From Anaeramoeba ignava BMAN (taxonomy: Eukaryota; Protista; Anaeramoebae), in the NCBI GenBank assembly GCA_028826165.1, contig JAPDFW010000064.1:1-64000 (forward strand): 64,000 nt of DNA. The letters are read 5' to 3'. The notes beneath the pieces are model-generated. The model worked only from the letters and a program-made list of their open reading frames with translations. It was not told where the DNA came from and did not search any database. How positions within the stretch are numbered: the first letter of the stretch is position 1; each line of letters opens with the position of its first letter. Below, in pieces: positions 13,861 through 58,458 of this stretch. The position numbers and the translations under genes are program-made.

Positions 13861-14295
13861 AATTTTTTTTTTAAATTTTTTTTTTTCATTTTTTTTTTTT
13901 TTTCATTTTTTTATTTTCAAATTAATCAAGAAAAGAAAAGAAAAGAAAAAATTTTTTTTTTTTGATTTATTTTTATTATTCTTTTAATTTTTTTTTTTAA
14001 TTATTAAAAAATATTGGATTTAATTGAAAATTTTTTTTTTTTTAATAATTGTTTTGGTAAGTAAAATCAAAAAACAAAAAAAAAAAAGCAAAAAATAAAT
14101 AATAAAAATAAATAACAATTAAAAATAAATTTCAATTAACCATTTACGTTATTTTAATTAATAAAATCTAAATAAAAACCAAAATAAAAATAAAAATATA
14201 TTGTTATTCTAAATAAAATCAAAATTAATAAATAAAAATAAAAATAAAAATAAAAATTTAAAATAAAATAAAAAAGAGCAAAAAAATCCAAAAAA

Positions 14296-17262: not shown

Positions 17263-18197
17263 TTAATTTCCACCTCTTAACCTTAAAACTAAATGAATTG
17301 TTGAATCTTTTTGAACTGAATAATCATTTAATGTTCTTGAATCTTCTAATTGTTTTCCTGCAAAAATTAATCTTTGTTGTTCAGATGAAATTCCTTCTTT
17401 TTCTTGAATTTTTGATTTAATATTCTCAATAGAATCATTTGGATCAACATCAAGTGTAATTGTTCTTCCAGTTAATGTTTTAACAAATATTTGAAAATTT
17501 CCACCTCTTAATCTTAAAACTAAATGAATTGTTGAATCTTTTTGAACTGAATAATCATTTAATGTTCTTGAATCTTCTAATTGTTTTCCTGCAAATATTA
17601 ATCTTTGTTGTTCAGGTGAAATTCCTTCCTTTTCTTGAATTTTTGATTTAATATTCTCAATAGAATCATTTGAATCAACATCAAGTGTAATTGTTCTTCC
17701 AGTTAATGTTTTAACAAATATTTGGAAATTTCCACCTCTTAATCTTAAAACTAAATGAATTGTTGAATCTTTTTGAATTGAATAATCATTTAAAGTTCTT
17801 GAATCTTCTAATTGTTTTCCAGCAAATATTAATCTTTGTTGTTCAGATGAAATTCCTTCTTTTTCTTGAATTTTTGATTTAATATTTTCAATAGAATCAT
17901 TTGGATCAACATCAAGAGTAATTGTTCTTCCAGCTAATGTTTTAACAAATATTTGAAAATTTCCAATTTTAATCTTAAAACTAAATGAATTTTTGATTTT
18001 TTTAAATTGAAAAATCATTTAAAAAGATAAAATGTTTTAATAAAATTTGTTTTCCACCTCTTAAAAAAAAAACTTTTGTTGAATGAAATTTAATGTTCTA
18101 TTTTTTTTTTGAACCTTTGTTGTTTTTTTTTTTTAATATTATATTTTCAATAGAATCAAATTCCAGTTAATGTTTTAACAAATATTTGAAAATTCAT
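17263..18197 (-). CDS. Divergent polyubiquitin-like gene: three intact 77-aa units, with a scrambled 5' unit
   Basis: Three [15 protein letters not shown] units ending RGGN*. ATG AAT TTT CAA at 18197 and the same 5' and 3' flanks as the copies at 41299, 45425 and 52297. 17960-18170 is degraded. Confidence 0.85.
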
Positions 18198-18199
18198 AA

Positions 18200-18640
18200 T
18201 TAATTTTTGGTTTTTGATTTTTAAAAATAAAAAGATAAAAAGATAAAAAGATAAAAAGATAAAAAGAATGAAAATAATCTATTTTTCAATTTTTAATTTT
18301 TCTTTTATATTATTTTTAATTGATTAAATATTTAAATTTATTTTATTAAAAATTGAGATTAACAAATATTTTTCTTTTTGTTTAACTTTTTATTTTTATT
18401 TTATTAATTAAATAATTCGATTTTTATTTTTTATTTTCCCTAATTCCTGTAACAAATTAAATTAATTTTAAATTATCAATTATTTTTATTTTAATTTCCA
18501 TTTTCTTTTCTTTCCTTCTTTTATTTTTTCTTTTTATTTTCAAAACAAAAACAAAATTCCAATTTTTATTTATTTAAATATAAAAATAATAAATAATATT
18601 TTAATAATTATTTACTTTTTATTTTTATTTATTAATTTAA
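18200..18640. promoter_or_regulatory. Inverted partial copy of the Ub / GTPase-RING shared intergenic region
   Basis: Reverse complement of ~44985-45424 (e.g. TTTTCCCTAATTCC, AAAGATAAAAAGAT, TTGAGATTAACAAATA). Confidence 0.75.
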
Positions 18641-19680
18641 TTTAAATCAAATTAAATATTAATCAAAATAAAATCAATAAATATTAATCAAATTAAATTA
18701 AATAAATATTAATCAAATTAAATCAAATAAATATTAATCAAATTAAATTAAATAAATATTAATTAAATAAATAAACCCCAATAAATATTAATCAAATTAA
18801 AAAATAAATAAATATTAATCAAATTAAATTAAATAAATATTAATCAAATTTAAACTAAATAAATATTAATCAAATCAAATCAAATAAATATTAATCAAAT
18901 TAAAATAAATAAATATTAATCAAATTAAATTAAATAAATATTAATCAAATTAAATCAATAAAAATAAATCAAAAATCAAATTAATCAAAATCAAATTCAA
19001 ATAAATATTAATCAAATTAAATTAAAATAAATATTAATCAAAATTAAGAAATCAAATAAATTAATCAAATTAAATCAATAAATATAGGTTAAATAAATCA
19101 AATCAAATCAAATAAATAAATAAATTAAATAAAATAAATAAATAAATCAAATTAATAAAATTAAAATCAAATAAATAAATATTAATCAAATTAAATCAAA
19201 TAAATAATTAATAAAATTAAATCAAAATAAATATTAATCAAATAAAATAAAATAAATTAATATCAAATATCAAAATCAAATTAAATTAAATAAATATTAA
19301 TCAAATTAAATTAAACTAAAGATTAATCAAATTAAATCAAATAAATATTAATCAAATTAAATTAAATAAATATTAATCAAATTAAATTAAATAAATATTA
19401 ATCAAATTAAATTAAATAAAAAATAAATATTAATCAAATTAAATTAAATAAATATTAATCAAATTAAAATAAATAAATATTAATCAAATTAAATTAAATA
19501 AAATTAATCAAAATTAAATAAATAAAATTAAATTAAAATATTAAATCAAATTAAATTAAATCAAATAAAAATCAAATAAATTAAATCAAATAAATAAAAA
19601 TCAAAATCAAATTAATCAAATAAATCAAATAAATCAAATTAAATTAAATAAATATTAATCAAATTAAATTAAATTAATAA
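18640..19680. repeat. (AAATAAATATTAATCAAATT)n-like satellite
   Basis: Visible ~1 kb array where the 5' half of the GTPase-RING gene would lie. Confidence 0.85.
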
Positions 19681-19683
19681 TAT

Positions 19684-20640
19684 TTTGATATTGGAAGAAC
19701 CAAGTTCAATAGAAATATTTCAAAAAGAAATGAAAAAGATTAAAAGAATTAATCAAGTTATTAAAAATAAAATCAAAAAGAAATTAGGAATTTTTTTATA
19801 ATCAATTTATTTGGATAATTTTATTTGAACTTGTTGTTAAAAATTCAAAAAAATATTAGAATGAGTTCAATTCTTTCAAAATGTTTACTTTATTATTCAG
19901 AAGAAGCTTTATATTCTTTTCATTTTTTTTTTGAAATTATAATGAAAGAAATGGAATTAGAAGATTATCTTTTATCAGAAAAAAATGCAATAAAACATCT
20001 TTCAGTAACATTTGAAGTTCAAAAAATTGAAAATTTAATTAAAATAAATATGAATACAAAATATTAGATTATCAAAATAAAAGAATGGAATTTTTTGATA
20101 AATTATATCCTCAATTATTAAATCAACAAATTTATCAATCAATTCAATCTAATTTTAGAAACTTAAGTGAAGAAAATTCACAACAAGAAGAGAAATATTC
20201 CAATATTAATTTTACTTTTTTTGAAAACAAAATTTTTTATGAGAAGATTAAAAAATATTTTCACACAAAATGAACCAATTTCATTGAAAACAAATTTAGA
20301 AGAAACTCAAGCTAAGAAAATATTTTCAGAAACAATTCTAAAATTTCAAGAATTTATTGAAAAATCAAATAATCTTCAAAATTCATTACAACAAATTTAT
20401 TTACAATATGTAGTTCTTAATAAAGAAATAAATGCAAATCATAATTTAGGTTCTTATATTCCAAATGATACTTGTTTAATTTGTTTTCATCCAATTCAAG
20501 AAAAACAATTAAAATGTGGACATTTTATTTGTGAAAAATATGATAAAATTTTTCGAAATTTATTTGATTTAATTAAATCAAATTTAAATAATGAAACAAT
20601 ACAAAATTCAATTAAATTTTGTTATTATTGAAAAGATAAA
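19684..20640 (+). pseudogene. 3' remnant of the GTPase-RING gene (no GTPase domain, degenerate RING)
   Basis: Fragments match the 49411-51396 protein (EEP.SIEIFQKE, MSSILSK, MEFFDKLYPQLLNQQ, CLICFHPIQEKQLKCGHFIC). Several frameshifts; RING Cys residues lost. Confidence 0.85.
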
Positions 20641-20731
20641 GTTTAAAATTTCAAAAAAAAAAAAAAAGATTTAAAGAAATTAATTTTTTTTTTTCATTTT
20701 TTTCTTTTTCATTTTTTTTTTTTTCAATAAA

Positions 20732-34154: not shown

Positions 34155-34376
34155 TTTTTGATTTTTGAAAAATAAAATTTTTTTCATTTTTTTTATAATA
34201 ATAATAATAATAAATGTATTTTTGTGTGAGAGTTTATTGTCAACAAAAAAAAAAGGAAAATCATATTTGGCTAAAAAAATTCTGATATTTCCCAAATCCA
34301 AAAAAAATTTGTCACACTTAATTCAATATTTTCTTAAAACCGAGTGAAAATTTTTCCAAATTAGATCTTTAAATGA

Positions 34377-36623: not shown

Positions 36624-36739
36624 GAAATCAAAAAATTAAAAGAAAAAATGAAAAATGAAAATTGAAAAATTTTTTTATCCGATTTTTAATTTTAATTTTA
36701 ATTTTAATTTTAATTTTAATTTAAATTTTAATTTAAATT

Positions 36740-37618: not shown

Positions 37619-37691
37619 TTTTTGATTTTTGAAAAATAAAATTTTTTTCATTTTTTTTTTCACTTTTCTTTTTTTAATAAAAATATTAAAA

Positions 37692-40600: not shown

Positions 40601-41093
40601 TTTATACATCAATTTGTCAAAGATTTTCTTCAGATGGAACAGAAAAATTAATTATAAAATTTATTCCACAAATAACAAATACAATAAATCAATATTCAAA
40701 AATATCTTTATATGAAATTGAAGAAGAAATAATTGAAAGTATTATTGGATTATTTGGGTAATTTAATTTAAAATTTAAAATTAAAATTAAAATTAAAATT
40801 AAAATTAAAATTAAAATTAAAATTAAAATTAAAATTAAAATTAAAATTAAAATTAAAATTAAAATTAAAATTTAAAATTAAAATTAAAAATTAAAATTAA
40901 AATTAAAAATTAAAATTAAAATTAAAATTAAAATTAAAATTAAAATTTTAGTGATTTAATTCAATGTTTTGGAATAGAAACTAAATCAGAAATTGATTTG
41001 GAATTTATTATAAAATTATTAGATGAAATGATAAAAAATGGAACACAAGAAAATAAAGATTTAGCTCAATGGATTTATAGATTAATAAAATAA
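37692..41093 (+). CDS. Importin-beta (karyopherin beta-1)-like, multi-exon, divergent
   Basis: MNITNLLIEAQ..IRNQAE..SLSNELQNEEKPTESRQLSGLLLK (IBN_N), SIEFWSSL, FGTILE, RESISWTISRI, KPIILGCLADI, GLFGDL; about 10 GT-AG introns. One possible frameshift near 40160. Confidence 0.85.
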
Positions 41094-41298
41094 AAATAAA
41101 AAATCAAAAAAAAAAGAAAAAAATATTTGTTAATCTCAATTTTTTAATAAAAATAAATTTAAATATTTAATCAATTAAAAATAATATAAAAGAAAAATTA
41201 AAATTGAAAAAATAGATTATTTTCATTCTTCTTTTTTTTTATCTTTTTATCTTTTTATCTTTTTTATTTTTAAAAAATCAAAAAATCAAAAATTAATT

Positions 41299-41769
41299 AT
41301 GAATTTTCAAATATTTGTTAAAACATTAACTGGAAGAACAATTACACTTGATGTTGATCCAAATGATTCTATTGAGAATATTAAATCAAAAATTCAAGAA
41401 AAAGAAGGAATTTCACCTGAACAACAAAGATTAATATTTGCAGGAAAACAATTAGAAGATTCAAGAACTTTAAATGATTATTCAATTCAAAAAGATTCAA
41501 CAATTCATTTAGTTTTAAGATTAAGAGGTGGAAATTTCCAAATATTTGTTAAAACATTAACTGGAAGAACAATTACACTTGATGTTGATTCAAATGATTC
41601 TATTGAGAATATTAAATCAAAAATTCAAGAAAAAGAAGGAATTTCACCTGAACAACAAAGATTAATATTTGCAGGAAAACAATTAGAAGATTCAAGAACA
41701 TTAAATGATTATTCAATTCAAAAAGAATCAACAATTCATTTGGTTTTAAGATTAAGAGGTGGAAATTAA
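41299..41769 (+). CDS. Divergent di-ubiquitin (2 x 77 aa, ends LRLRGG-N)
   Basis: ORF track; about 15-17 substitutions per unit versus canonical ubiquitin by manual comparison. Confidence 0.95.
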
Positions 41770-42470
41770 TTTAAATTCCAAATTTTCTTTTTTTTCATTT
41801 CATTTTTGTTTTAAAAATAAATTTTTTTTTTTGAATAAATCAATAAAAAATAAAAAAAAAATAAATTTTATTCCACTTTTTATTCCACTTTTTTATTTTA
41901 AATAAAAGAAAAGAAAAGAAAAATATTTTTTATTCCATTTTTTAATTTTAATTTTAATTTTAATTTTAATTTTGAATTTGATGAAAAAAATTGATAAAAA
42001 TATAAAAATAAAATTTAATAAATTTAATAAATTAATTAATTTAATTTTTATTTTAAATTTAAATTTTAAAATGATATTTTTTATTAAATTAAATTAATTA
42101 AATTTTTGATTTTGATTTTTTTTGATGAAATGAAATGGAAATAAAAAATATTTTTATTTTCCAAAATTATTTAATTAATTAATAAATAAATTCAAAAAAA
42201 AAATGGAAAGAAATTTAATAAACAAATAAACTAATAAATTATTCCTATTTCTTATTTTTTTTTAAAAAAGAAATTTAAATTTGAATTTGATTTTAGTTCT
42301 TATTTATTGAAAATGAAAATGAAAATGAAATTGAAAATGAAATTGAAAATGAAAATGAAATTGAAAATGAAAATGAAATTGAAAATGAAAATGAAAATGA
42401 AAATGAAATTGAAAATGAAAATGAAATTGAAATTGAAAATGAAATTGAAAATGGAATTGAAAATGGAATA

Positions 42471-44560
42471 TTAAATATTTTGAACTCCAACTTTATCTTT
42501 GCAATAAGAACAAAATCCTATTGGGTTTTGAATTGTTTCATTATTTAAATTTGATTCAATTAAATCAGGTAAATTTCCAAAAATTTCAATACATTTTCCA
42601 CAAACCAAATGTCCACATGTTAATCGTTTTTCTTGAGCTGGATGAAAACAAATTGTACAAGTATCACTTGGGAGATAAGAACGTAAAGTGTGATCATGAT
42701 CATTTATTTCTTTATTAAGAATTGCATATTGTAAATAAATTTGTTGTAATGAATTTTGAAGATTATTTGATTTTTCAATAAATTCTCGAAAATTTAAAAT
42801 TGTTTCTGAAAATATTTTCTTAGATTGAGTTTCTGTTTCTGGAAATTGAAAATTTCCTTTCCATGAAATTGGTTTAGCTTTTGAGAAAGCAGATTTTATT
42901 TTTCTCCTAAATTTTCCATCTCGATCAAAATAATAATCTGTATTACAATGTTCTTGTGTATGATTTCCTCTTGTAAATGAACATTGAATTCCTTCTTTTG
43001 GTATTTTTTTCTGTTCTTTTTGACTTAAGTTTCTAAAATTAGATTGAATTGATTGACAAGGTTGTTGATTTAATAATTGAGGATATAATTTATCAAAAAA
43101 TTCCATTCCTTTCTTTTGATAATCTAATAATGGTGTTGCATTCATATTGATTTTAATTAAATTTTCAATTTCTTGAACTACAAATGTTATTGCAAGATGT
43201 TTTATTGCATTTTTTTCTGATAAAAGATAATCTTCTAAACTCATTTCTTTCATTATCATTTCAAAAAAACGAAAAGAATATAAAGCTTCTTCTAAATCAT
43301 AAAGTAAACATCTTGAAAGAATTGAACTCATTCTAATATTTTCTTGAAATTTTTTAACAACAAGTTCAAATAAAATAATCCAAATAAATTGATTATAAAG
43401 AATTCCTAATTTCTTTTTGTTTTGATTTTGTTTTTCAATAACTTGATTAATTAATTCTTTTAATCTTTCAATTTCTTTTTGAAATATTTCTATTGAATTT
43501 GGTTCTTCAATATCAAAATTTGGTAAAGAAACACAATGAACTTCACTATACCATCTTAATAATTCTGGATTTTCAGGATCTTCAGCATGTTCATCAAAAA
43601 AAATTTTGAGTTAATTTTTCATAATCAGTTTCATATTTTTTTAAACATTTATTTTTAACTAAAATCAAAGCTGGTTTTTCTGCTGATTGAACTTTTTTAG
43701 TTGATTTTTTTGCAATTTTTAATAATTCTGAATAATATATATTATCTGCAAAATCCAAAGTTGAAATATAAACAATAACATTTGAAACCAAATAAGATAA
43801 TCTAGGAAAATGTTCTTCAACTGATTTTCTTCTTTTTTTTGCATATTTTTGTTCTTTGATTTTATTTTCTTTCAAAAAATTTTTTGTTTCAATATCAATA
43901 TCAATAGGAACTCTTGAACCAGCTGAATTTCCTTCAAAATCCAAATATCTATAATTATTATTATTTGGATCATCAATAACCCACAAATTTCCAGTTGTTG
44001 GAGGCATTGCTAAATTAGTTTCTATACCAATTTTAGGACTTATTCCAACATTTCCTGTTTTTCCATTAAATTTATTAGAAGTTAATAAAGCATTTATTAA
44101 AGTACTTTTTCCTGAATGAGTATTTCCAGTAAAAGAAATTACATTTGAAATTTCATCTTTTGGTGAATTATCACGAATATGATCAACAGCAGATTGATTT
44201 ATTTCCAAACCATAAATTTCTTTTTCCTTCTTTAATAAAACTTGGTTTTTTTTGAGTTGATATTTTGGCAATCATAAAATGTTCATTTGAATATTCAGGA
44301 TTCTGGGGTTGTTCTTGAATTCGATGAATTTGATTATTTTGATTATTTTGATTATTTTGATTATTTCGATTATTTTGGTTATTTTGGTTATTTTGAGGTG
44401 GGGTTCTCGTTTTAATTTGTTGATTGTTTTGATTATTTGGAGGATTTCTATTTGGAAATTTTGGAGGTGGTTGTCTCGATCTTGAAAGTGGTTTTTTATT
44501 TGAAGGATGATTTGAATTAAATTGTTCATTTGGAAGATTTCTTTGTTGTTTTGGATTCAT
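42471..44560 (-). CDS. GBP/atlastin-like GTPase + C3HC4 RING, copy 1 (two +1 homopolymer frameshifts, ~44222 and ~43600)
   Basis: GNTHSGKS, TTGNLW, LDFEG, SYLVSNVIVY, LILVKNK; CTIC-x10-CGH-x2-C-x2-C...CSYC. Confidence 0.85.
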
Positions 44561-45424
44561 TTTTGTTTTGTTTTGTTTTGTTTTGTAAAAGAAATTAATA
44601 AAAATAAAAATAAAAGTAAAAGTAAAAAGTAAAAGAATTGAATAAAAAAAAATTAAAAGGAATTAAAAGATGAATAAGAAATGAAAAATGATCTTCTTTT
44701 TTTAATTTAAATTTTTATTTTTTATATCTCTTTAAATTAATAAAGGAAGGCAAAAATTTTTTAATTAAATTTTTATTTAAATTTTATTTATTTAATTTTA
44801 CTTTTTTTAAAAATAAAAAGAAGAATAGAATTAAAATCAAAAAAAAGAAGAAGAAAGAAGAATTAAAAAGAAAAAAAATTATTTTTCCTCTTTTTAATTA
44901 AATTTTTTTTTTAAAAATAAATAAAAACAAAATTATAATAAAATTAATTTATTTTTAACATTTATTTTATTTTAATTTTTATTTAAATTAAATTAATAAA
45001 TAAAAATAAAAGTAAATAATTATTAAAATATTATTTATTATTTTTATATTTAAATAAATAAAAGTGGAATTTTGTTTTTTTTTTGTTTTGAAAATAAAAA
45101 GAAAGAAATAAAGAAAGAAAGAAAATGAAAATTAAAATAAAAATAATTTATAATTTAGAAATTAATTTAATTTGTGGAATTAGGGAAAATAAAAATAAAA
45201 ATCGAATTATTTAATTAATAAAAATAAAAAATCAAAAAAAAAGAAAAAAATATTTGTTAATCTCAATTTTTTAATAAAAATAAATTTAAATATTTAATCA
45301 ATTAAAAATAATATAAAAGAAAAATTAAAATTGAAAAAATAGATTATTTTCATTCTTCTTTTTTTTTATCTTTTTATCTTTTTATCTTTTTATTTTTAAA
45401 AAATCAAAAAATCAAAAATTAATT
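44561..45424. promoter_or_regulatory. Conserved intergenic region between divergent GTPase-RING and di-ubiquitin genes (candidate bidirectional promoter)
   Basis: Near-identical at 51397-52296; partial at 48590-49250, 41100-41298 and, inverted, 18200-18640. Confidence 0.65.
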
Positions 45425-45895
45425 ATGAATTTTCAAATATTTGTTAAAACATTAACTGGAAGAACAATTACTCTTGATGTTGATTCAAATGATTCTATTG
45501 AGAATATTAAATCAAAAATTCAAGAAAAAGAAGGAATTTCATCTGAACAACAAAGATTAATTTTTGCAGGAAAACAATTAGAAGATTCAAGAACATTAAA
45601 TGATTATTCAATTCAAAAAGAATCAACAATTCATTTAGTTTTAAGATTAAGAGGTGGAAATTTTCAAATATTTGTTAAAACATTAACTGGAAGAACAATT
45701 ACACTTGATGTTGATTCAAATGATTCTATTGAGAATATTAAATCAAAAATTCAAGAAAAGGAAGGAATTTCACCTGAACAACAAAGATTAATTTTTGCAG
45801 GAAAACAATTAGAAGATTCAAGAACATTAAATGATTATTCAATTCAAAAAGAATCAACAATTCATTTGGTTTTAAGATTAAGAGGTGGAAATTAA
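45425..45895 (+). CDS. Divergent di-ubiquitin, copy 2
   Basis: As for 41299-41769. Confidence 0.95.
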
Positions 45896-46556
45896 TTTAA
45901 ATTTCAAATTTTCTTTTTTTTCATTTCATTTTTGTTTTAAAAATAAATGAATTCTTTCTTATTTTTATTTTTGAATAAATCAATAAAAAATAAATAAAAA
46001 AATCAATTTTATTCCACTTTTTATTCCACTTTTTTATTTTAAATAAAAGAAAAGAAAAGAAAAATATTTTTTATTCCATTTTTAATTTTAATTTTAATTT
46101 TATTTTTTTAAAAATTTTGATTTTGATTGAAAAATTGATAAAAATATAAAAATAAAATTTAATAAATTTAATAAATTAATTAATTTAATTTTTATTTTAA
46201 ATTTAAATTTTAAAATGATATTTTTTATTAAATTAAATTAATTAAATTTTTGATTTTGATTTTTTTTGATGAAATGAAATGGAAATAAAAAATATTTTTA
46301 TTTTCCAAAATTATTTAATTAATTAATAAATAAATTCAAAAAAAAAAATGGAAAGAAATTTAATAAACAAATAAACTAATAAATTATTCCTATTTCTTAT
46401 TTTTTTTTAAAAAAGAAATTTAAATTTGAATTTGATTTTAGTTCTTATTTATTGAAAAAAGAAATTGAAAATGAAAATGAAATCGAAAATAAAATTGAAA
46501 TTGAAAATGGAAATGAAAATGAAATTGAAAATGAAATTGAAATTGAAAATGGAATA

Positions 46557-48582
46557 TTAAATATTTTGAACTCCAACTTTATCTTTGCAATAAGAACAAA
46601 ATCCTATTGGGTTTTGAATTGTTTCATTATTTAAATTTGATTCAATTAAATCAGGTAAATTTCCAAAAATTTCAATACATTTTTCACAAACCAAATGTCC
46701 ACATGTTAATCGTTTTTCTTGAGCTGGATGAAAACAAATTGTACAAGTATCACTTGGGAGATAAGAACGTAAAGTGTGATCATGATCATTTATTTCTTTA
46801 TTAAGAATTGCATATTGTAAATAAATTTGTTGTAATGAATTTTGAAGATTATTTGATTTTTCAATAAATTCTCGAAAATTTAAAATTGTTTCTGAAAATA
46901 TTTTCTTAGATTGAGTTTCTGTTTCTGGAAATTGAAAATTTCCTTTCCATAAAATTGGTTTAGCTTTTGAGAAAACAGATTTTAATCCTCTCATAAATTT
47001 TTTTTTAATCTTTAAATTTGAACATTGAATTCCTTCTTGTGAATTTTCTTCACTTAAATTTGTAAAATTAGATTGAATTGATTGACAAGGTTGTTGATTT
47101 AATAATTGAGGATATAATTTATCAAAAAATTCCATTCCTTTCTTTTGATAATCTAATAATGGTGTTGCATTCATATTGATTTTAATTAAATTTTCAATTT
47201 CTTGAACTACAAATGTTATTGCAAGATGTTTTATTGCATTTTTTTCTGATAAAAGATAATCTTCTAATACCATACCTTTCATTATCATTTCAAAAAAACG
47301 AAAAGAATATAAAGATACTTCTAAATCATAAAGTAAACATTTTGAAATAATTGAACTCATTCTAATATTTTCTTGAAATTTTTTAACAACAAGTTCAAAT
47401 AAAATAATCCAAATAAATTGATTATAAAGAATTCCTAATTTCTTTTTGTTTTGATTTTGTTTTTCAATAACTTGATTAATTAATTCTTTTAATCTTTCAA
47501 TTTCTTTTTTAAATATTTCTATTGAATTTGGTTCTTCAATATCAAAATTTGGTAAAGAAACACAATGAACTTCACTATACCATCTTAATAATTCTGGATT
47601 TTCAGGATCTTCAGCATGTTCATCAAAAAAACTTTGAGTTAATTTTTCATAATCAGTTTCATATTTTAAACATTTATTTTTAACTAAAATCAAAGCTGGT
47701 TTTTCTGCTGATTGAACTTTTTTAGTTGATTTTTTTGCAATTTTTAATAATTCTGAATAATATTTATTTGCAGCAAAATCCGAAGTTGAAATATAAACAA
47801 TAACATTTGAAACCAAATAAGATAATCTAGGAAAATGTTCTTCAACTGATTTTCTTCTTTCTTTTGCATATTTTTGTTCTTTGATTTTATTTTCTTTCAA
47901 AAAATTTTTTGTTTCAATATCAATATCAATAGGAACTCTTGAACCAGCTGAATTTCCTTCAAAATCCAAATATCTATAATTATCACTATTTGGATCATCA
48001 ATAACCCACAAATTTCCAGTTGTTGGAGGCATTGCTAAATTAGTTTCTATACCAATTTTAGGACTTATTCCAACATTTCCTGTTTTTCCATTAAATTTAT
48101 TAGAAGTTAATAAAGCATTTATTAAAGTACTTTTTCCTGAATGAGTATTTCCAGTAAAAGAAATTACATTTGAAATTTCATCTTTTGAAGAATTATCACG
48201 AATATGATCAACAGCAGATTGATTTATTTCCAAACCATAAATTTCTTTTCCTTCTTTAAAAAAACTTGATGTTTTTGAGTTGATATTTTGGCAATCATAA
48301 AATGTTTATTTAAATATTCATCATTTTGGGGTTGTTCTTGAATTCGATGAATTTGATTATTTTGATTATTTTGATTATTTTGATTATTTTGATTATTTTG
48401 ATTATTTTGGTTATTTTGAGGTGGGGTTCTCGTTTTAATTTGTTGATTGTTTTGATTATTTGGAGGATTTCTATTTGGAAATTTTGGAGGTGGTTGTCTC
48501 GATCTTGAAAGTGGTTTTTTATTTGAAGGATGATTTGAATTAAATTGTTCATTTGGAAGATTTCTTTGTTGGTTTGATTCAT
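46557..48582 (-). CDS. GTPase-RING, copy 2 (indels in the first ~350 nt; 558-aa open core)
   Basis: Same motifs. One base is missing just after the ATG and another near 48272 relative to copy 3. Confidence 0.82.
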
Positions 48583-49410
48583 GTTTCCATTGTTTTGTTT
48601 TGTTTTGTTTTGTTTTGTAAAAGAAATTAAAAAAAATAAAAATAAAAATAAAAGTAAAAGTAAAAGTAAAAGAATTGAATAAAAAAAAAATTAAAAGGAA
48701 TTAAAAGATGAATAAGAAATGAAAAATGATCTTCTTTTTTTGATTTATTTTTTTTTTTATATCTCTTTAAATTAATAAAGGAAGGCAAAAATTTTTTAAT
48801 TAAATTTTTTATTTAAATTTATTTATTTATTTAATTTTACTTTTTTTAAAAATAAAAAGAAGAATAGAATTAAAATCAAAAAAAAAAAAAGAAGAAAGAA
48901 GAATTAAAAAGAATTAAAAAATTATTTTTCCTCTTTTTAATTAAATTTTTTTTTTAAAAAATAAATAAAAATAAAATTATAATAAAATTAATTTATTTTT
49001 AACATTTATTTTATTTTAATTTTTATTTAAATTAAATTAATAAATAAAAATAAAAGTAAATAATTATTAAAATATTATTTATTATTTTTATATTTAAATA
49101 AATAAAAGTGGAATTTTGTTTTTTTTTTGTTTTGAAAATAGAAAGAAAGAAAGAAAGAAAGAAAGAAAATGGAAATTAAAATAAAAATAATTTATAATTT
49201 AGAAATTAATTTAATTTGTGGAATTAGGGAAAATAAAAATAAAAATAAAAATAAAAATAATAATCATTTCTTATTTTTTAAAAAAGAAATTTAAATTTAA
49301 ATTTGATTTTTATTAATTTTGATTTTGAAATTGAAATTGAAATTGAAATTGAAAATGAAAATGAAATTGAAAATGAAAATGAAAATGAAAATGAAATTGA
49401 AAATGGAATA

Positions 49411-51394
49411 TTAAATCTTTTTAACTCCAACATTTTGCTTGCAATAAGTGCAAAATCCTATTGGGTTTTGAATTGTTTCATTATTTAAATTTGATTCAAT
49501 TAAATCAGGTAAATTTCCAAAAATTTCAACACATTTTCCACAAATCAAATGTCCACATGTTAATTGTTTTTCTTGAGCTGGATGAAAACAAATTGAACAA
49601 GTATCATTTGGGAGATAAGAACGTAAATCATGATCATGATCATTTATTTCTTTATTAAGAATTGCATATTGTAAATAAATTTGTTGTAATGAATCTTGAA
49701 GATTATTTGATTTTTCAATAAATTCTCGAAAATTTAAAATTGTTTCTGAAAATATTTTCTTAGATTGAGTTTCTGTTTCTGAAAATTCTAAATTTGTTTT
49801 CAATGAAATTGGTTCATTTTGTGTGAAAACATTTTTTAATCCTCTCATAAAAAATTTTGCTTCCAAAAAAGTAACTTTGATGAAAATGTATGATTTCCTC
49901 TTGTAAGTGAACATTGAATTCTCTTCTTGTTGTGAATTTTCTTCACTTAAATTTGTAAAATTGGATTGATTTTGTTGATAAGGTTGTTGATTTAATAATT
50001 GAGGATATAATTTATCAAAAAATTCCATTCCTCTAATTTCGTAATCTAATAATGATGTTGTATTCATATTGACTATGATTAAATTTTCAATTTCTTGAAT
50101 TGCAAATGTTATTGCAAGATGTTTTAATGCGATTGCTTTTGATAAAAGATAATTTTCTAAACCCATTCCTTTCATTATCATTTCAAAAAAACGAAAAGAA
50201 TATAAAGATACTTCTGAATCATAAAGTAAAGATTTTGAAAGAATTGAACTCATTCTTATATTTTCTTGAAATTCTTTAACAACAAGTTCAAATAAAATAA
50301 TCCAAATAAATTGATTATAAAGAATTCCTAATTTCTTTTTGTTTTGATTTTGTTTTTTAATAACTTGATTAATTAATTCTTTTAATCTTTCAATTTCTTT
50401 TTGAAATATTTCTATTGAATTTGGTTCTTCAATATCAAAATTTGGTAAAGAAACACAATGAACTTCACTATACCATCTTAATAATTTTGGATCTTCAAGA
50501 TTTTCAGCATGTGCATCAAAAAAACTTTGAGTTAATTTTTCATAATCAGTTTCATATTTTCCTAAACATTTATTTTTAACTAAAATTAAAGCTGGTTTTT
50601 CTGCTGATTGAACTTTTTGAGTTGATTTTTTTGCAGTTTCTAATAATTCTGAATAATATATATTATCTGCAAAATTCAAAGTTGAAATATAAACAATAAC
50701 ATTTGAAACCAAATAAGATAATCTAGGAAAATGTTCTCCAACTGCTTTTCTTCTTTCTTTTGCATATTTTTGTTCATCGATTTGATTTTTTTTCAAAAAT
50801 TTTTTTGTTTCAATATCAATATCAATAGGAACTCTTGAACCAGCTGAATTTCCTTCAAAATCCAAATATCTATAATTATCACTATTTGGATCATCAATAA
50901 CCCACAAATTTCCAGTTGTTGGAGGCATTGCTAAACTAGTTTCTATACCAATTTTAGGACTTATTCCAACATTTCCTGTTTTTCCATTAAATTTATTAGA
51001 AGTTAATAAAGCATTTATCAAAGTACTTTTTCCTGAATGAGTATTTCCAGTAAAAGAAATTACATTTGAAATTTCATCAGTTGAAGAATTATCACGAATA
51101 TGATCAATACCAGATTGATTTAATACCAAATCATAAATTTCTTTTCCTTCTTTAAAAAAACTTGATGTTTTGTGAGTTGATATTTTGGCAATCATAAAAT
51201 GTTCATTTGAATATTCATTATTTTGATGATTTGAATTAATTTGGTTATTTGGAGGTGAAGTTCTACTTGGAAGTTTTGGAGGTGGTTTTGTTGGTCTTTT
51301 AGGAGGTTGTCTTGATTTTGAAAGTGGTTTTTTATTTGAAGGATGATTTGAATTAAATTGTTCATTTGGAATATTTCTTTGTTGGTTTGGATCC

Positions 51395-51396
<2 letters not shown>
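49411..51396 (-). CDS. GTPase-RING, copy 3, intact 661 aa
   Basis: Uninterrupted, intronless ORF: Pro/Asn-rich leader, GBP-like G1-G4, helical region, CSIC..CGH..C..C..CTYC. Confidence 0.92.
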
Positions 51397-51425
<29 letters not shown>

Positions 51426-52296
51426 GTTTTGTAAAAGAAATTAAAAATAAAAATAAAAGTAAAAATAAAAGTAAAAGAATTGAATAAAAAAAAAATTAAA
51501 AGGAATTAAAAGATGAATAAGAAATGAAAAATGATCTTCTTTTTTTAATTTAATTTTTTATTTTTTATATCTCTTTAAATTAATAAAGGAAGGCAAAAAT
51601 TTTTTAATTAAATTTTTATTTAAATTTTTATTTATTTAATTTTACTTTTTTTAAAAATAAAAAGAAGAATAGAATTAAAATCAAAAAAAAAAAGAAGAAA
51701 GAAGAATTAAAAAGAATTAAAAAATTATTTTTCCTCTTTTTAATTAAATTTTTTTTTTTAAAAATAAATAAAAACAAAATTATAATAAAATTAATTTATT
51801 TTTAACATTTATTTTATTTTAATTTTTATTTAAATTAAATTAATAAATAAAAATAAAAGTAAATAATTATTAAAATATTATTTATTATTTTTATATTTAA
51901 ATAAATAAAAGTGGAATTTTGTTTTTTTTTTGTTTTGAAAATAAAAGAAAATAAAGAAAGAAAGAAAGAAAATGGAAATTAAAATAAAAATAATTTATAA
52001 TTTAGAAATTAATTTAATTTGTGGAATTAGGGAAAATAAAAATAAAAATCGAATTATTTAATTAATAAAAATAAAAATCAAAAAAAAAAGAAAAAAATAT
52101 TTGTTAATCTCAATTTTTTAATAAAAATAAATTTAAATATTTAATCAATTAAAAATAATATAAAAGAAAAATTAAAATTGAAAAAATAGATTATTTTCAT
52201 TCTTCTTTTTTTTTATCTTTTTATCTTTTTATCTTTTTATCTTTTTATCTTTTTATCTTTTTTATTTTTAAAAAATCAAAAAATCAAAAATTAATT

Positions 52297-52767
52297 ATGA
52301 ATTTTCAAATATTTGTTAAAACATTAACTGGAAGAACAATTACACTTGATGTTGATTCAAATGATTCTATTGAAAATATTAAATCAAAAATTCAAGAAAA
52401 AGAAGGAATTTCACCTGAACAACAAAGATTAATTTTTGCAGGAAAACAATTAGAAGATTCAAGAACATTAAATGATTATTCAATTCAAAAAGAATCAACA
52501 ATTCATTTGGTTTTAAGATTAAGAGGTGGAAATTTTCAAATATTTGTTAAAACATTAACTGGAAGAACAATTACACTTGATGTTGATTCAAATGATTCTA
52601 TTGAAAATATTAAATCAAAAATTCAAGAAAAAGAAGGAATTTCATCTGAACAACAAAGATTAATTTTTGCAGGAAAACAATTAGAAGATTCAAGAACTTT
52701 AAATGATTATTCAATTCAAAAAGAATCAACAATTCATTTGGTTTTAAGATTAAGAGGTGGAAATTAA
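52297..52767 (+). CDS. Divergent di-ubiquitin, copy 3
   Basis: As for 41299-41769. Confidence 0.95.
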
Positions 52768-52925
52768 TTTAAATTCCAAATTTTCTTTTTTTTCATTTCA
52801 TTTTTGTTTTAAAAATAAATGAATTCTTTCTTATTTTTATTTTTGAAATTATTTTTGAAATTATTTTACTTCTTTTTATTTTTAAAAAAAAAGGAAAAGA
52901 AAAGAAAAATAATTTTTTTTTCATC

Positions 52926-53624: not shown

Positions 53625-55966
53625 TCATTTCAAATTTAACATAATTATTTCTTTTTTAATTTGATTAAATTCAAAAATTTTTTTTTGATATTCTTTAAAT
53701 AATTTTTTTGATTCTTCAAAAGAAAGTTGTTCAACTGATTTTAAATTCATGAATAAAATATTAACAAAATGTTTATCAAGATTATTTTTTGATAAATTGA
53801 TATATTTTTGATGGTCTTGTCCTTTCCACCATTTTTCTTGAAATTCTGATTGATTAATATTTAATTGATTACAAGTAATTCCTTCCAAAAAATTTGCACT
53901 TGAAACAAATGTTGTAAATAAATAACCAGATTCAGTAACAAATAATATTTTGGAATTTCTAAATTTGGAAATGTAGTAAATATTTGCTTGAATATTTTTT
54001 GGATTTGTTATTAATAAACTGTAAGCTACAATTTTAAGTAAATCATCAACTCCTGTATCTTCATCATAATCATTCAAAATAGATTGTGCTTGATGACAAC
54101 ATTCAATAATGCATTCTAGTTTATCTTGTGGTGTTTTACTTTGGTTGATTTTTTTTATTTCTTGAACTATTTTTTCAACTTTTTTTTCATCAAGATATTC
54201 TTCTTTAATTCCAAAATGTTTTGGTAATAAAAATGATAATCGATTTATTTTTTCATTGAATTTTTTATCTTGTAATAAAAATTTTTCACAAGTTAATTTG
54301 AATAAACAAGATCCAACTCTTGACATGAAGTATTGTTCAATAATATCATAAACCATTTCGCTTTGTTCTTTTTTTGGGGGTGTGATTAAATTGAAATTAT
54401 TATCGAAATTTACATTTGGATCTTCATCTAAATAATATAAATCATCACATAAATCTTCATTTGTAAATGAATGTGTAATTGAATTTGTATTAGAACTTTG
54501 ATTTTCAATTTGATTTTGAATTTGATTTTGATTTTGATTTTGATTTTGATTTTGATTTTGATTTTGATTTTCATTTTGATTTTGATTTTGATTTTGATTT
54601 TGATTTTGATTTTGATTTTCATTTTGATTTTGATTTTGATTTTGATTTTGATTTTGATTTTGATTTTGATTTTGATTTTGATTTTGATTTTGATTTTGAT
54701 TTTGATTTTGATTTTGATTTTGATTTTGATTTTGATTTTGATTTAGATTTTGATTTAGATTTTGATTTTGATTTTGATTTTGATTTTGATTTTGATTTTG
54801 ATTTTGATTTTGATTTTGATTTTGATTTTGATTTTGATTTTGATTTTGATTTTGATTTTGATTTTGATTTTGATTTTCATTTTGATTTTGATTTTGATTT
54901 TGATTTTGATTTTGATTTTGATTTTGATTTTGATTTTCATTTTGATTTTGATTTTGATTTTGAATTTTATTTTGATTTTGATTTTGATTTTGATTTTGAA
55001 TTTGATTTTGATTTTGATTTTGATTTTGATTTTGATTTTGATTTTGATTTTGATTTTGATTTTGATTTTGATTTTGAATTAAATCAAATTTTGTTTCTAA
55101 ATTGAAACTTAAATTTATATTTTCTTTCTTTTGAAATAAAATATGATTAGAATATTTTCTAGCTACTTGTTCAATAATTTCATTTACTAAATATTCTGAT
55201 TCTTCTAATGAAACATCTTTCTCTAAATAATTATTAATTGCAAAAGATAAATCACTTGATAATTCTGAATCTGGGAAATCTTCAAGAAAATTTTCTAATT
55301 CTTGATAATTACTAATAAATATATTTTTGATTTTTTGATATCTTTGTTTTTTTTGAGATGAAGAATAAATTTTCAATTTTCTATTAAGTTTATGTCTTGA
55401 TTTATGTTTATGATAAATTTCTTTTGGAATATATTCAGTTCCACTTGAATCTGAGTTTGAAAATTCTGATCTAGACCAAGAACAACCTGGAAACTTAATA
55501 GATTCAGAAAGTATTATAATAGAACAAGAAGGTATTTGTTCATTCAAAAATACAACCTTCATTAATAATATAAGGAATATTAAGCATTTTTATTGGCTTT
55601 ATATTTCCAATCTCATCAAATAATATTGTGTATTTTTTCTTTTTAACTGCTTGAATTAATATTTTCTCTTTTAATTTTGGTGGTTTTTTTATTATTTTGA
55701 GATGTTTATAATTGTTTTGCTTTTATAAATAATCCAATTGCTCCATTTATTGTAACAAAATTATTTGGATGATTTTCATTTGTGATTAAAATGTGTGTTT
55801 CTATAAATTCTCTTGTAAAACTCATTGTTCCTAATGCCATACTATGTGGAACTGCTAAAATCCCATTTTGTTGAACAATTAATTCTAATAAATCTGAAAA
55901 TGTTTTGTTGTGTCTAAGTGAATTAATTAAAAGATTATTTTGAATTTCTTTTTGGAATTTTTTCAT
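53625..55966 (-). CDS. VPS9-domain (Rab5-family GEF) protein with VARP/ANKRD27-like N-terminus and poly-(NQ) insert; frame broken at ~55560-55710
   Basis: KTPQDKLECI, GVDDLLKIVAY, NP..I.ANI.YI..F, ESGYLFTTF (VPS9); N-terminal LAVP..FIETHIL..FVTING. Confidence 0.82.
54495..55080. repeat. (TTTTGA)n coding microsatellite, poly-NQ
   Basis: In frame within the VPS9 gene. Confidence 0.95.
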
Positions 55967-56355
55967 TTTTTATTTTGAAATAATTTTAATAGTAAAGAAA
56001 AAAATGAAAAATGAAAAAAATGAAAAAAAAAATAAAAATAAAAATAAAAATAAAAATAAAAATAAAAATAAAAATTAAAAATAAAAATAAAAATAAAAAT
56101 AAAAATAGAAATTGAATTTATTCCACTTTTTTTTCCACTTTTTTTCCACTTTTTTTCCACTTTTTTTTCCTGTTTTTAAAAAATAATTCTTATTTTAAAT
56201 TCTTTTTTTTCCTGTTTTTAAAAATAAAAATTGTCTTATTTTTGGGAATAAATAAATTTTTTTTCCTTTTTTTCTTTTTCATTTTTTTTTCCTTATTTTT
56301 TTCCTTTTTTTTTCATTTTAAAACTTTTAATCAAATTAAAAATTAAAAATTAGAA

Positions 56356-58458
56356 ATGAATCCAAATAATAATAACAACAACAATAACAACAATAATAAT
56401 AACAATAACAATAATAATAATAACAATTTATTATTACAAGATCTTAAAAATCTTCTTTCTTCAAATTCTTTTCAAGATTTTACAATTTTAATTTATGAAA
56501 ACAATATCCAAAAAAAAATTAAAGTTCATAAATGTATTTTAATTTGTAGAAGTTCTTTTTTTAAAGGAATTCTTTTTGAAAATGATAATATTAATGAAAT
56601 TCTTTTAAATGATATTGATAAAGAAACAATTGATTTTATTCTCGATTTTATTTATACATCTAAAGTTAATTTTTTCCCAAATCAAAATTTAATTCCACTT
56701 TTAAAAGCTTCAAACAAATTTGAATTAAATTCTCTTTCCAAAATTTTAGAAGAACAAATTATCCAAAATTTAAATTATTCAAATGTTTTTAATCTTTTTA
56801 AAGAAATTCATTCTTTAAAAAATATTAAAATTAAAAATGAATGTTTAAATTTTATTCATTCTAATTTCTCAATTCTTAATCAAAAGGGAGAATTTTTAAA
56901 ATTAAATCAAGATCAAATTAATTTAATTATTCAAGATAAAATTTTAAGAAAAGATTTTTTTGAAATTGAATTTCTTGAAATGATTGAAAATTGGATCAAA
57001 ATGGAATTTCAAAAATTATTAAAAAATCCTAATCAAAAAAAATTAGAAATAGAAAAAAAAAGAATAAATCAAAAATTCCAAAAAAATTTTTCTCAAATTA
57101 AATCTTTTTTAATTTCTGAAAAATTTTTTCAACAAATTAATCATTTTGAAAATTTATCAAAATATTTTATCAAAAGAAACAAAATAAGAGAACATGTGAA
57201 TTTAGAACTGGAAAATAAAAAATTAAAAAAAGAAATTGATAAATTAACAAAAAATCAAAATCAAAATCAAAATCAAAATCAAAATCAAATTCAAAATCAA
57301 AATCAAAATCTAATTCAAAATCAAAATCAAAATCAAAATCAAAATCAAAATCAAAATCAAAATCAAAATCAAAATCAAAATCAAAATCAAAATCAAAATC
57401 AAATTCAAAATCAAAATCAAAATCAAAATCAAAATCAAAATCAAAATCAAAATCAAAATGAAAATGAAAATGAAAATGAAAATGAAAATCAAAATCAAAA
57501 TCAAAATCAAAATCAAAATCAAAATCAAAATCAAAATCAAAATCAAATTCAAAATCAAAATCAAATTCAAAATCAAAATCAAAATCAAAATCAAATTCAA
57601 AATCAAATTCAAATTCAAAATGAAAATCAAAATCAAAATCAAAATCAAATTCAAAATCAAATTCAAAATCAAAATCAAAATCAAAATCTAATTCAAAATC
57701 AAATTCAAAATCAAAATGAAAATCAAATTCAAATTCAAAATCTAATTCAAATTCAAAATGAAAATCAAAATCAAAATGAAAATGAAAATGAAAATGAAAA
57801 TCAAAATCAAAATCAAAATCTAAATCAAAATCAAAATGAAAATCAAAATCAAAATCAAAATCAAAATCAAAATCAAAATCAAAATCAAAATCAAAATCAA
57901 AATCAAAATTTCAAAGAATCTAAAATAATAAATGAAAATGAAAAAATTAAGAAAATAAAAGAATGGATTAAAGATGATAAATTTTTCAATTCAATGAAAT
58001 TAAGATTTTCAGCAACAAAAGATGGATTTTCTTCCAAAATTTTTCATAAAAAATGTGATAATAAAGGAGAAACATTAGTTATTATTAAAACAACTAATAA
58101 TTGTATTTTTGGAGGATTTACAAAAAAAGGATGGATACCAAATAAGGAATATAAATGGATTTCTGATTCAGAAGCTTTTTTATTTAGTCTTAAAAATCCA
58201 AAAGGAAATGAACCACAAAAATTTCCAATTAAAAAATCAGAAAAAGAACGTTCAATTTATTATGATAAAAATTATGGACCATTTTTTGGAGGAGGATTTG
58301 GACTTCCTTCTGATTTAAAAAATGGATTTTCAAATGATTTTGGAGAATATTATAAATTACCTAAAGGAATTCATTATGGTTCAAATGAATGTGAAAATTA
58401 TTTAGCTGGAGGTAAAGGTGAATGGAGAACTGAAGAACTTGAATGTTATTTCAAATGA
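56356..58458 (+). CDS. BTB/POZ-TLDc protein with poly-N and poly-(NQ) tracts
   Basis: DFTILI..KVHKCILICRSSFF..LDFIYT; FSATKDGFSSKIFHKKCDNKGETLVIIKT..IFGGFT. Confidence 0.92.
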   Translation: MNPNNNNNNNNNNNNNNNNNNNNNLLLQDLKNLLSSNSFQDFTILIYENNIQKKIKVHKCILICRSSFFKGILFENDNINEILLNDIDKETIDFILDFIYTSKVNFFPNQNLIPLLKASNKFELNSLSKILEEQIIQNLNYSNVFNLFKEIHSLKNIKIKNECLNFIHSNFSILNQKGEFLKLNQDQINLIIQDKILRKDFFEIEFLEMIENWIKMEFQKLLKNPNQKKLEIEKKRINQKFQKNFSQIKSFLISEKFFQQINHFENLSKYFIKRNKIREHVNLELENKKLKKEIDKLTKNQNQNQNQNQNQIQNQNQNLIQNQNQNQNQNQNQNQNQNQNQNQNQNQNQIQNQNQNQNQNQNQNQNQNENENENENENQNQNQNQNQNQNQNQNQNQIQNQNQIQNQNQNQNQIQNQIQIQNENQNQNQNQIQNQIQNQNQNQNLIQNQIQNQNENQIQIQNLIQIQNENQNQNENENENENQNQNQNLNQNQNENQNQNQNQNQNQNQNQNQNQNQNFKESKIINENEKIKKIKEWIKDDKFFNSMKLRFSATKDGFSSKIFHKKCDNKGETLVIIKTTNNCIFGGFTKKGWIPNKEYKWISDSEAFLFSLKNPKGNEPQKFPIKKSEKERSIYYDKNYGPFFGGGFGLPSDLKNGFSNDFGEYYKLPKGIHYGSNECENYLAGGKGEWRTEELECYFK

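Follow-up and report, generated by a model that had tools for sequence, protein, structure and literature searches.

A GBP/atlastin-like NTPase-RING gene co-duplicated with a divergent polyubiquitin in Anaeramoeba ignava

Ubiquitin genes and putative GTPase-RING E3 genes alternate head-to-head in Anaeramoeba ignava, raising the question of whether the two form a self-contained, ubiquitin-based defence unit, as an earlier note on the window (the 64,000-nucleotide stretch of contig JAPDFW010000064.1 analysed here) had proposed. Both genes proved to be real and co-copied, while a dedicated defence role for the pair as such is not established by the sequence comparisons. On balance, we lean towards a fast-evolving membrane E3 ligase co-duplicated with a divergent, ordinarily conjugated polyubiquitin, the two being possibly co-regulated.

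The array at 41299-52767 was confirmed, in the order Ub> <NTPase-RING, Ub> <NTPase-RING, <NTPase-RING, Ub> (Table 1). The claimed order and head-to-head spacers therefore stood, but a ubiquitin gene stands opposite copies 1 and 3 only, not copy 2, and the first ubiquitin gene is without an upstream partner; each gene type thus also persists unpaired. The inverted pair claimed at 17-20.6 kb does contain a variant polyubiquitin of the same type (NF, for the Asn-Phe replacing Met1), but its partner is a broken 3' half and a 1-kb AT satellite lies between them. This half-gene is similarly truncated in the overlapping contigs C147 and C145, and a clean NF-type 4-mer occupies the matching place in C147. 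In the main array, a tandem duplication with a unit of about 4.1 kb was evident (40759-45202 vs 44895-49246, 92% identity). A third head-to-head spacer, of 890 bp, was found in C147, and the three spacers (864, 900, and 890 bp) were about 95% identical to each other, with a divergence between units of just 1.7-3.2% that could reflect regulatory constraint.

Table 1. Features of the NTPase-RING and NF-type ubiquitin locus, in window coordinates
Feature	Position	Strand	Remarks
NF-type polyubiquitin, 4 units	17263..18197	-	unit 1 garbled here, the other three clean repeats of 77 aa
Inverted ubiquitin-proximal half of shared spacer	18198..18694	.	88% identical to 44560-45430
AT satellite, 10/25-bp period	18642..19680	.	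occupies place of remaining spacer and 5' half of NTPase gene
Broken NTPase-RING 3' half	19694..20643	+	residues ~320-650; stops, frameshifts, no P-loop
NF-type di-ubiquitin 1	41299..41769	+	156-aa product of two 77-aa units with GG-N at its end; lacks an upstream head-to-head partner
NTPase-RING copy 1	42471..44560	-	two frameshifts (+1) at homopolymers, close to 44222 and 43600
CCHH zinc module, basic amphipathic helix, and WxG motif of copy 1	42860..43062	-	family-conserved; most variable segment between copies
Head-to-head spacer, 864 bp	44561..45424	.	candidate bidirectional promoter
NF-type di-ubiquitin 2	45425..45895	+	
NTPase-RING copy 2	46557..48582	-	two -1 frameshifts near 48576 and 48272, low-complexity N-terminus
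Truncated spacer, ~640 of 870 bp	48583..49252	.	ubiquitin gene of copy 2 unit missing
NTPase-RING copy 3	49411..51396	-	open 661-aa frame
Head-to-head spacer, 900 bp	51397..52296	.	
NF-type di-ubiquitin 3	52297..52767	+	

Copy 3 is the only NTPase-RING copy with an open frame in the assembly; the two single-base frameshifts in each of copies 1 and 2 fall in short homopolymer runs and are probably Nanopore or assembly errors. Eleven homopolymer indels separate two contig versions of one neighbouring gene. In the NCBI model, a single 1199-aa 'RBR-type E3' spans copies 3 and 2, apparently an artefact of annotation. The base composition of the locus is host-like, and the absence of introns, once put forward as a distinguishing mark of the two genes, does not set them apart: on either side, the ankyrin (794 aa), VPS9 (645 aa), and 1365-aa genes each form one long ORF, and the ordinary polyubiquitin genes of A. 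ignava are likewise intronless, although an importin-beta-like gene at 38-41 kb is split into short ORFs.

Every copy of either gene maps to a single region or to alternative contigs that overlap it, and the pairing therefore arose once and was then duplicated. A dispersed or subtelomeric family was ruled out, the matches in C147, C145, and C74 being overlapping versions of this same region. Since one adjacency was duplicated locally, the repeated pairs do not provide the independent evidence of linkage that had been read into them. Linkage elsewhere was likewise not found: no ubiquitin gene adjoined the homologue at any of 18 loci from other sources, a comparison spanning mostly distant organisms and several short contigs that excludes only distant conservation. 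Within A. ignava, the sole divergent polyubiquitin and the sole members of the NTPase-RING family sit side by side. Because both genome-unique genes adjoin and RING genes are few (34-138 PF13639 matches, a lower bound and a small share of genes), this adjacency is somewhat unlikely to be due to chance. No E1, E2, or protease gene was recognised within the array or its flanks, and no transposase or viral gene nearby.

The NF unit is 77 aa long and carries 14 changes relative to ordinary ubiquitin, K11R among them; it does not match the standard polyubiquitin unit (76 aa, Met start, seven lysines). The genes consist of two to four head-to-tail units, each ending LRLRGG, with a terminal extra residue. 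Identity to the ordinary ubiquitin of A. ignava is 82% (62/76), and the best outside units, at 65/76, match barely better. K11R and the loss of Met1 are fixed in 14/14 units, while K48, K63, K6, K27, K29, and K33 are retained, and by sequence comparison the E1 tail, all main binding patches, and the tested E1, receptor, and deubiquitinase surfaces are unchanged. Most of the changes are conservative and are also found elsewhere; among 192 divergent ubiquitin units from other organisms, P37S (1/192) and N60S (5/192) are rare; by a rough count, 27 of the 120 ubiquitin matches listed have non-Met junctions. That the NF form is simply the organism's ordinary ubiquitin was ruled out by three ordinary polyubiquitin genes (C75), an L40 fusion (C60), and an S27a fusion (C126). 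At C75, too, the polyubiquitin gene and a neighbour are repeated in tandem as one. NF genes in A. ignava all lie at this locus and in its overlapping contigs.

ISG15 and FAT10 are uncleaved di-ubiquitin-like modifiers, about 30% identical to ubiquitin and with their own E1. The NF di-ubiquitins resemble them in that roughly 156 encoded residues hold a pair of ubiquitin folds, but the analogy drawn in the earlier note fails because GG closes every unit, identity to ordinary ubiquitin is so much higher, and the E1 tail is intact; the number of units per gene also varies. With its E1 tail and main binding patches kept, the variant is unlike ISG15 and FAT10 and is unlikely to be private. Polyubiquitins with junction insertions have been described from Rhizaria (PMC3014934) and Plasmodium ovale (PMC10457151), and divergent ubiquitins and such insertions have had several origins in protists (PMC10457151, PMC3014934). 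These share with the NF genes a 77-residue repeat, one extra junction residue, and concerted evolution of the units. In contrast, the NF form also replaces Met1 and differs at 13 further residues, and A. ignava keeps a separate, ordinary 76-aa polyubiquitin.

The 661-aa protein of copy 3 combines a GBP/atlastin-type fold with a C-terminal C3HC4 RING (AlphaFold pLDDT 84, Foldseek). Foldseek matched the model to hGBP1 (E 3e-7), with atlastin-1 and RNF112 (E 3e-6) close behind, and the G domain alone gave Z scores of 13.2 for atlastins (atlastin-1, rmsd 3.7 over 193 residues), 12.9 for SMG9, and 12.6 for GBP2. Its motifs comprise the P-loop (G117-S124), T160, D179-x-E181-G182, an invariant R215, and N275-K276, followed by a helical region and the RING (C600-C652); G1 (GxxxxGKS), the G2 Thr, and G3 (DxEG) are all present and the same in four full-length copies. 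Conservation in the family alignment is 99% for K123, 91% for T160, 100% for D179, E181, and G182, 90% for T119, and 99% for R215. In that same alignment the cis arginine finger of the P-loop is absent, residue 120 being His (family His 31%, Thr 17%, Gly 14%, Gln 9%), and so is the guanine-specifying aspartate of G4, where N-K stands without a conserved Asp. PF02263 fell below its cut-off for the 661-aa protein (14.4 vs 21.1 bits) and matched 1 of 54 family members (E 9e-4). The RING has all eight zinc ligands in C3HC4 order in 4/4 full-length copies (residues 600-652); PF00097 scores of 17.7-21.6 bits straddle the cut-off of 21, the family profile of the region matches many solved RINGs, and weak FYVE matches overlap it. 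The description 'GBP-like GTPase-RING E3' thus holds for the fold and the zinc ligands, but 'GTPase' is unproven because both the P-loop arginine and the G4 aspartate are missing. With a DFCP1-like invariant arginine instead of the P-loop one, the protein may use either GTP or ATP. Among the window copies, the Cys-Cys-His-His module with WxG is complete in copy 1 only; an in-frame deletion removed both His in copy 2, and in copy 3 module and WxG were lost through a compensated frameshift and substitutions.

Among known proteins, the vertebrate RNF112 joins a RING to a GBP/atlastin-like GTPase and has a transmembrane helix, its E3 and GTPase activities being reported as independent (PMC12012479). 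It shares with the A. ignava protein the fold and a C3HC4 RING in a single chain (Atlas feature score 0.88, a lead only), and His at the P-loop arginine position has been reported for one mammalian RNF112. The two differ in that the RING is N-terminal in RNF112, identity is 12-14%, and RNF112 has the transmembrane helix whereas a CCHH zinc module with an amphipathic helix characterises the NTPase-RING family. DFCP1/ZFYVE1, an ATPase with a trans-finger R271 (PMC10329651; bioRxiv 10.64898/2026.05.27.728090), was also among the Atlas rows, by shape and by features. By motif spacing rather than superposition, its P-loop Thr (T189), switch-II Glu (E237), and R271 would correspond to T119, E181, and R215 of the A. 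ignava protein, with 34 residues from the Glu to the arginine in each. Unlike DFCP1, the A. ignava protein lacks FYVE domains, has Thr for the adenine-stacking His195 (family Phe 47%, Thr 37%), and probably has Asn275 at the His323 position. The best structural matches, hGBP1 and the atlastins, share the DxEG switch-II and the helical region after the G domain, whereas the A. ignava protein lacks their P-loop arginine finger, RD-type G4, and CaaX or transmembrane hairpin, and adds a RING.

Exhaustive protein searching recovered 207 relatives of the NTPase-RING protein, whereas word-index searches found almost none outside A. ignava. Their distribution is patchy, taking in amoebozoans, heteroloboseans, choanoflagellates, a metamonad, and a rotifer; fusions to patatin or kinase domains are frequent, and OTU-like fusions also occur. 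Pfam has no model for the family, and searchable papers contained no description of it or of Anaeramoeba ubiquitin. This is apparently a widespread, undescribed branch of the GBP/atlastin superfamily, although a quick-search tree of 54 G domains did not settle the placement of the query.

The NTPase-RING copies contain no stop codon at 135 variable sites, where 10.8 would be expected under neutrality, and family-conserved sites are less variable among them than the rest (2/43 vs 99/473, p=0.008). Divergence at first and second codon positions (7.3%) exceeds that of the spacer (2.4%) two- to threefold. The best-fitting models put overall omega at 0.42-0.56 and leave many sites near neutral. Of three codon models, FMutSel0 alone gave significant positive selection (M2a vs M1a, p=2e-5), F61 (p=0.81) and F3x4 (p=0.42) giving none, and a raw dN/dS above 1 was not accepted as proof, since the choice of codon model moves omega between 0.42 and 1.5. 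For the ubiquitin, dN/dS is 0.15 among NF units and 0.3 against the ordinary form; it is under purifying selection. Both genes look functional from these patterns.

In the reading that we favour, two functional genes would have become neighbours once and then undergone tandem and inverted segmental duplication with unequal loss of partners. The first would encode a membrane-acting E3 ligase, of which the fold, motifs, RING ligands, and conservation are observed. It may bind membranes through the basic amphipathic helix beside the CCHH module and dimerise through its NTPase domains upon nucleotide binding, with Arg215 probably supplied in trans, in the manner of DFCP1; dimerisation would thereby bring the RINGs together, so that they ubiquitinate proteins of a membrane that could be endosomal, phagosomal, or facing a symbiont. 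The second gene would yield a polyubiquitin cut after each GG by general deubiquitinases and conjugated by ordinary E1/E2 enzymes. The variant would therefore enter the common pool, with a changed N-terminus and no capacity to extend K11 chains. Both genes may be co-induced from the spacer that they share; no means by which the RING might choose NF over ordinary ubiquitin is evident.

A housekeeping membrane enzyme in birth-and-death turnover, doing DFCP1- or RNF112-like work that has nothing to do with defence, with extra copies drifting under relaxed selection and with the NF form as a relaxed paralogue homogenised by concerted evolution, seems to us doubtful. Zinc-module loss in copies 2 and 3, the dead half-gene, the omega estimates, and the recurrence of divergent ubiquitins and non-Met junctions in other organisms all agree with it, but it sits poorly with the absence of stops, the excess of change at the first two codon positions over the spacer, and a patchy family often fused to effector-like domains. 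The original proposal, a co-regulated, self-contained defence unit whose NTPase senses an intruder or its membrane and whose RING attaches a dedicated NF mark, we regard as unlikely: the pairing has a single origin with partners lost separately and no linkage elsewhere, NF keeps the general ubiquitin surfaces, no E1, E2, or protease gene was recognised beside it, and the selection signal vanishes under two codon models. These points have to be set against exclusive co-location in the genome, a spacer kept in three full units, copy number that varies between contig versions, fast protein change with one significant test, and the domain fusions of homologues.

That a mobile or virus-derived segment carried in the pair as a foreign ubiquitin and E3 is very improbable. 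Giant viruses do encode polyubiquitins, Hokovirus is among the ubiquitin matches, and the genes are intronless and locally repeated with one inverted copy; yet viral contigs scanned with one pattern held no relative, named homologues come from cellular eukaryotes, and neither the neighbouring genes, the base composition, nor the outside ubiquitin matches suggest a foreign source. No more credible is an NF ubiquitin that caps chains or serves as a decoy, tuning the host ubiquitin system or resisting its hijack independently of the neighbouring E3: fixation of K11R and Met1 loss and the rarity of P37S and N60S would fit, but the six other lysines are kept and the changes are mostly conservative and seen elsewhere. 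The boldest extension, which we think decidedly unlikely, is a second conjugatable ubiquitin co-induced from a shared bidirectional promoter with a diversifying, membrane-sensing NTPase-E3 that preferentially attaches it, a two-gene module of cell-autonomous immunity or symbiont control writing its own mark.

The NTPase-RING branch bears on the origin of GBP-like and RNF112-like membrane ubiquitination, and on whether it can run on ATP. In keeping, next to its ordinary polyubiquitin, one that is under selection, 18% divergent, and devoid of K11 and Met1, A. ignava offers a natural test of the extent to which the ubiquitin code can be split, and if the RING preferred the NF variant this would be a rare case of a ligase with its own ubiquitin. 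Whatever the role of the pair, the NTPase-RING branch and the NF polyubiquitin remain testable subjects.

Three 156-aa di-ubiquitin genes, all on the forward strand, are interleaved with three reverse-strand NTPase-RING genes, the gene order that the earlier note had described. Self-comparison of the window revealed a tandem unit of ~4.1 kb with copies 85-92% identical, and, in inverted orientation, a partial copy at 17-20.6 kb. The head-to-head spacers were 864 and 900 bp long and ~95% identical, gaps counted. The closest database protein was M0811_13704 of Anaeramoeba ignava. The assembly comprises 42.8 Mb in 147 contigs, and was built from Nanopore data and polished with Illumina (PMC11550330).

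Coordinates of the array and of other features observed in the window (contig C65, positions 1-64000) and on contigs C13, C64, and C75
Feature	Location	Strand	Remark
Variant di-ubiquitin genes	window 41299-41769, 45425-45895, 52297-52767	+	
NTPase-RING copies 1, 2, 3	window 42471-44560, 46557-48582, 49411-51396	-	copy 3 is the query, 661 aa
Variant polyubiquitin	window 17263-18197	-	four units
NTPase-RING 3' half	window 19694-20643	+	broken
NCBI model	window 46557-51396		a single 1199-aa "RBR-type E3" spliced from copies 3 and 2; probably an annotation artefact caused by the frameshifts
Tandem array	window 11725-13950		~134-bp units, ~3% GC; upstream of an ankyrin gene
Two class-IV aminotransferase genes and the 454-aa P-loop gene between them	window 33264-37663		P-loop gene has a weak DAP3 match; another local duplication
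BTB-(BACK)-TLDc gene	window 25532-26968		family with dozens of copies genome-wide, 75-91% identical
BTB-(BACK)-TLDc gene	window 56356-58458		
P-loop region in a 791-aa frame	C64:813904-814197		weak family-profile match (E 4e-8); possibly a distant GBP-superfamily member
Three ordinary polyubiquitin genes	C75:49784-61594		the last unit of each stops at LRLR and lacks GG, which rules out its conjugation
Small ubiquitin-fold genes	C75:53092-53490, 55605-56003, 59488-59916		Cys-rich CaaX-like ends; tandem repeats interspersed with the ordinary polyubiquitin genes; similar to membrane-anchored ubiquitin-fold proteins
701-aa ORF	C13:436494-438599		near-canonical ubiquitin unit inside, then a Gly run

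Genome-wide searches confined the variant ubiquitin and NTPase-RING to the window's contig, C65, and three others (C147, C145, and C74), which also held all 12 matches to the exact variant junction pattern; within this genome the two genes are thus found exclusively together. Overlap with the window is in its left part for C147 and C145 and in its right part for C74, with common flanking genes 98-99.7% identical. The contigs represent one region in alternative versions, which leaves only one independent pair, and the several pairs counted in the earlier note go back to one adjacency that was duplicated locally. On C147, a further full NTPase-RING stands between 4-unit and 2-unit ubiquitin genes, and the matching site in C65 and C145 holds only one ubiquitin gene and the dead half gene, reflecting either copy-number variation or assembly collapse. 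Partners were lost separately within the array, where copy 2 lacks a ubiquitin gene and has its spacer truncated, the first ubiquitin gene stands without a partner, and opposite the ubiquitin gene at 17 kb lie an AT satellite and the broken 3' half. On C75, the locus for ordinary polyubiquitin likewise repeats in tandem along with an adjacent ubiquitin-like gene, so in this genome there is nothing unusual in a gene being duplicated together with its neighbour. Since RING genes (34 strict and 138 candidate matches, a lower bound from one RING model) make up a small share of the genome, the original adjacency, a single event judged post hoc, is mildly unlikely to have arisen by chance.

The variant is not the organism's ordinary ubiquitin, a possibility that the earlier note had itself raised, as three polyubiquitin genes and two ribosomal fusions elsewhere encode the 76-aa form. 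Each variant unit has 77 aa, with Asn-Phe in place of Met1 and 14 of 76 positions changed relative to the ordinary form, including K11R, P37S, G53S, and N60S. The variant retains the Ile44, Ile36, Phe4, and Asp58 patches unchanged, as well as six lysines and the C-terminal tail, and to call this ubiquitin "private" was an overstatement. A unit with such a tail should suit both ordinary deubiquitinases, for cutting, and ordinary E1, for charging. GG ends every unit and genes contain 2-4 units, which identifies a polyubiquitin precursor and not the di-ubiquitin-like modifier of ISG15/FAT10 type to which it had been likened. With dN/dS of 0.15 among 14 variant units, ~0.3 against the ordinary form, and 0.01 among ordinary units, the variant is under selection, looser than that on the ordinary form. 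Among the 120 best matches, the junction was absent from other organisms, and the best outside unit matched the variant at 65 of 76 residues. Junction insertions have been reported in Rhizaria (PMC3014934) and Plasmodium ovale (PMC10457151), but there Met is kept as far as the texts describe, whereas the variant replaces Met1. More than 100 further ubiquitin-like matches (30-76% identity) were scattered over the genome (C56, C59, C66, C70, C84, C24, and C87), some in tandem arrays or in long ORFs.

For NTPase-RING, all P-loop matches in Pfam were sub-threshold and the RING matches close to cut-off. An exhaustive search yielded 207 relatives at ~25-39% identity, in Pharyngomonas, Salpingoeca, Mastigella, Pelomyxa, Protostelium, Naegleria, Balamuthia, Clydonella, and the rotifer Rotaria, with a strict RING pattern in 50 of 94 long matches; no A. 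flamelloides member was found among the named matches. Several relatives run on into patatin, kinase, or OTU-like domains, and the alignment with one of the patatin type, which we take to be fungal forms, spanned the entire G domain (probability 99.7). The AlphaFold model (pLDDT 84, pTM 0.80) best matched hGBP1, GBP2/5, atlastins, and RNF112, and the G domain alone matched atlastins, SMG9, and GBP2 at Z 12.6-13.2. The description "GBP-like" therefore holds at the superfamily level. The catalytic set differs: position 3 of the family P-loop is a conserved Thr, the arginine finger is missing, and G4 reads Asn-Lys but lacks the Asp. A His in place of the P-loop arginine abolishes turnover in RNF112 (PMC12012479), so NTPase-RING activity would need a second arginine; Arg215 is conserved in 99% of the family. 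The ATPase DFCP1 combines a P-loop Thr with a switch-II Glu and, 34 residues further on, an arginine that acts in trans (bioRxiv 10.64898/2026.05.27.728090). The query matches this by motif spacing, with a P-loop Thr, a switch-II Glu, and Arg215 at the same distance, and Arg215 might act likewise; DFCP1's adenine-stacking histidines are not present. In the stretch that separates the helical region from the RING, family members carry a Cys-Cys-His-His motif together with a basic amphipathic segment and WxG (46 of 93 long matches). The mean hydrophobic moment of the amphipathic segment (0.58 against a background of 0.48 +/- 0.13) and its mean charge of +1.8 are a modest sign, from sequence, that this module may be a membrane anchor.

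Copy 3 is the sole open frame in the assembly. Its zinc ligands were lost via a compensated frameshift and WxG via substitution, losses that are real because the dead half gene has the same features. Copy 2 lost both zinc-module histidines in frame, and copy 1 and the C147 copy retain the full module. Short homopolymers are the sites of the single-base frameshifts in copies 1, 2, and C147, as they are of 11 indels that separate two versions of a neighbouring gene, and these frameshifts are probably sequencing errors; the codons concerned were left out of codon analyses. Over 516 codons in the four copies, 101 residues vary, no stop occurs among the 135 variable sites (10.8 expected if neutral), and family-conserved positions are spared (p=0.003-0.024). 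Distant copies differ by 4.8-7.5% at codon positions 1+2, 2.5-4.1% at position 3, and 1.7-3.2% in the spacer. These proteins are both maintained and fast-changing. The best-fitting frequency models gave an omega of 0.42-0.56 and the others one of 1.0-1.5, and a positively selected class was significant under FMutSel0 only; diversifying selection is possible.

The earlier note observed the locus largely correctly, but it counted one adjacency as several and exaggerated how private the modifier is. Linkage elsewhere was looked for at 18 loci around homologues, with gene tables and translated searches, and none showed a ubiquitin gene; these loci came from Pelomyxa, Naegleria, Balamuthia, Rotaria, other assemblies, and contigs of metagenomes, some of them short and some sharing an organism. 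The exclusive co-location of the two genes within this genome speaks for a dedicated defence cassette, yet we regard such a cassette as improbable. Our preference, a slight one, is for a fast-evolving membrane E3 ligase from an undescribed branch of the GBP/atlastin superfamily, which would have been duplicated together with a divergent polyubiquitin, perhaps under common regulation, with that polyubiquitin being handled by the ordinary ubiquitin machinery.
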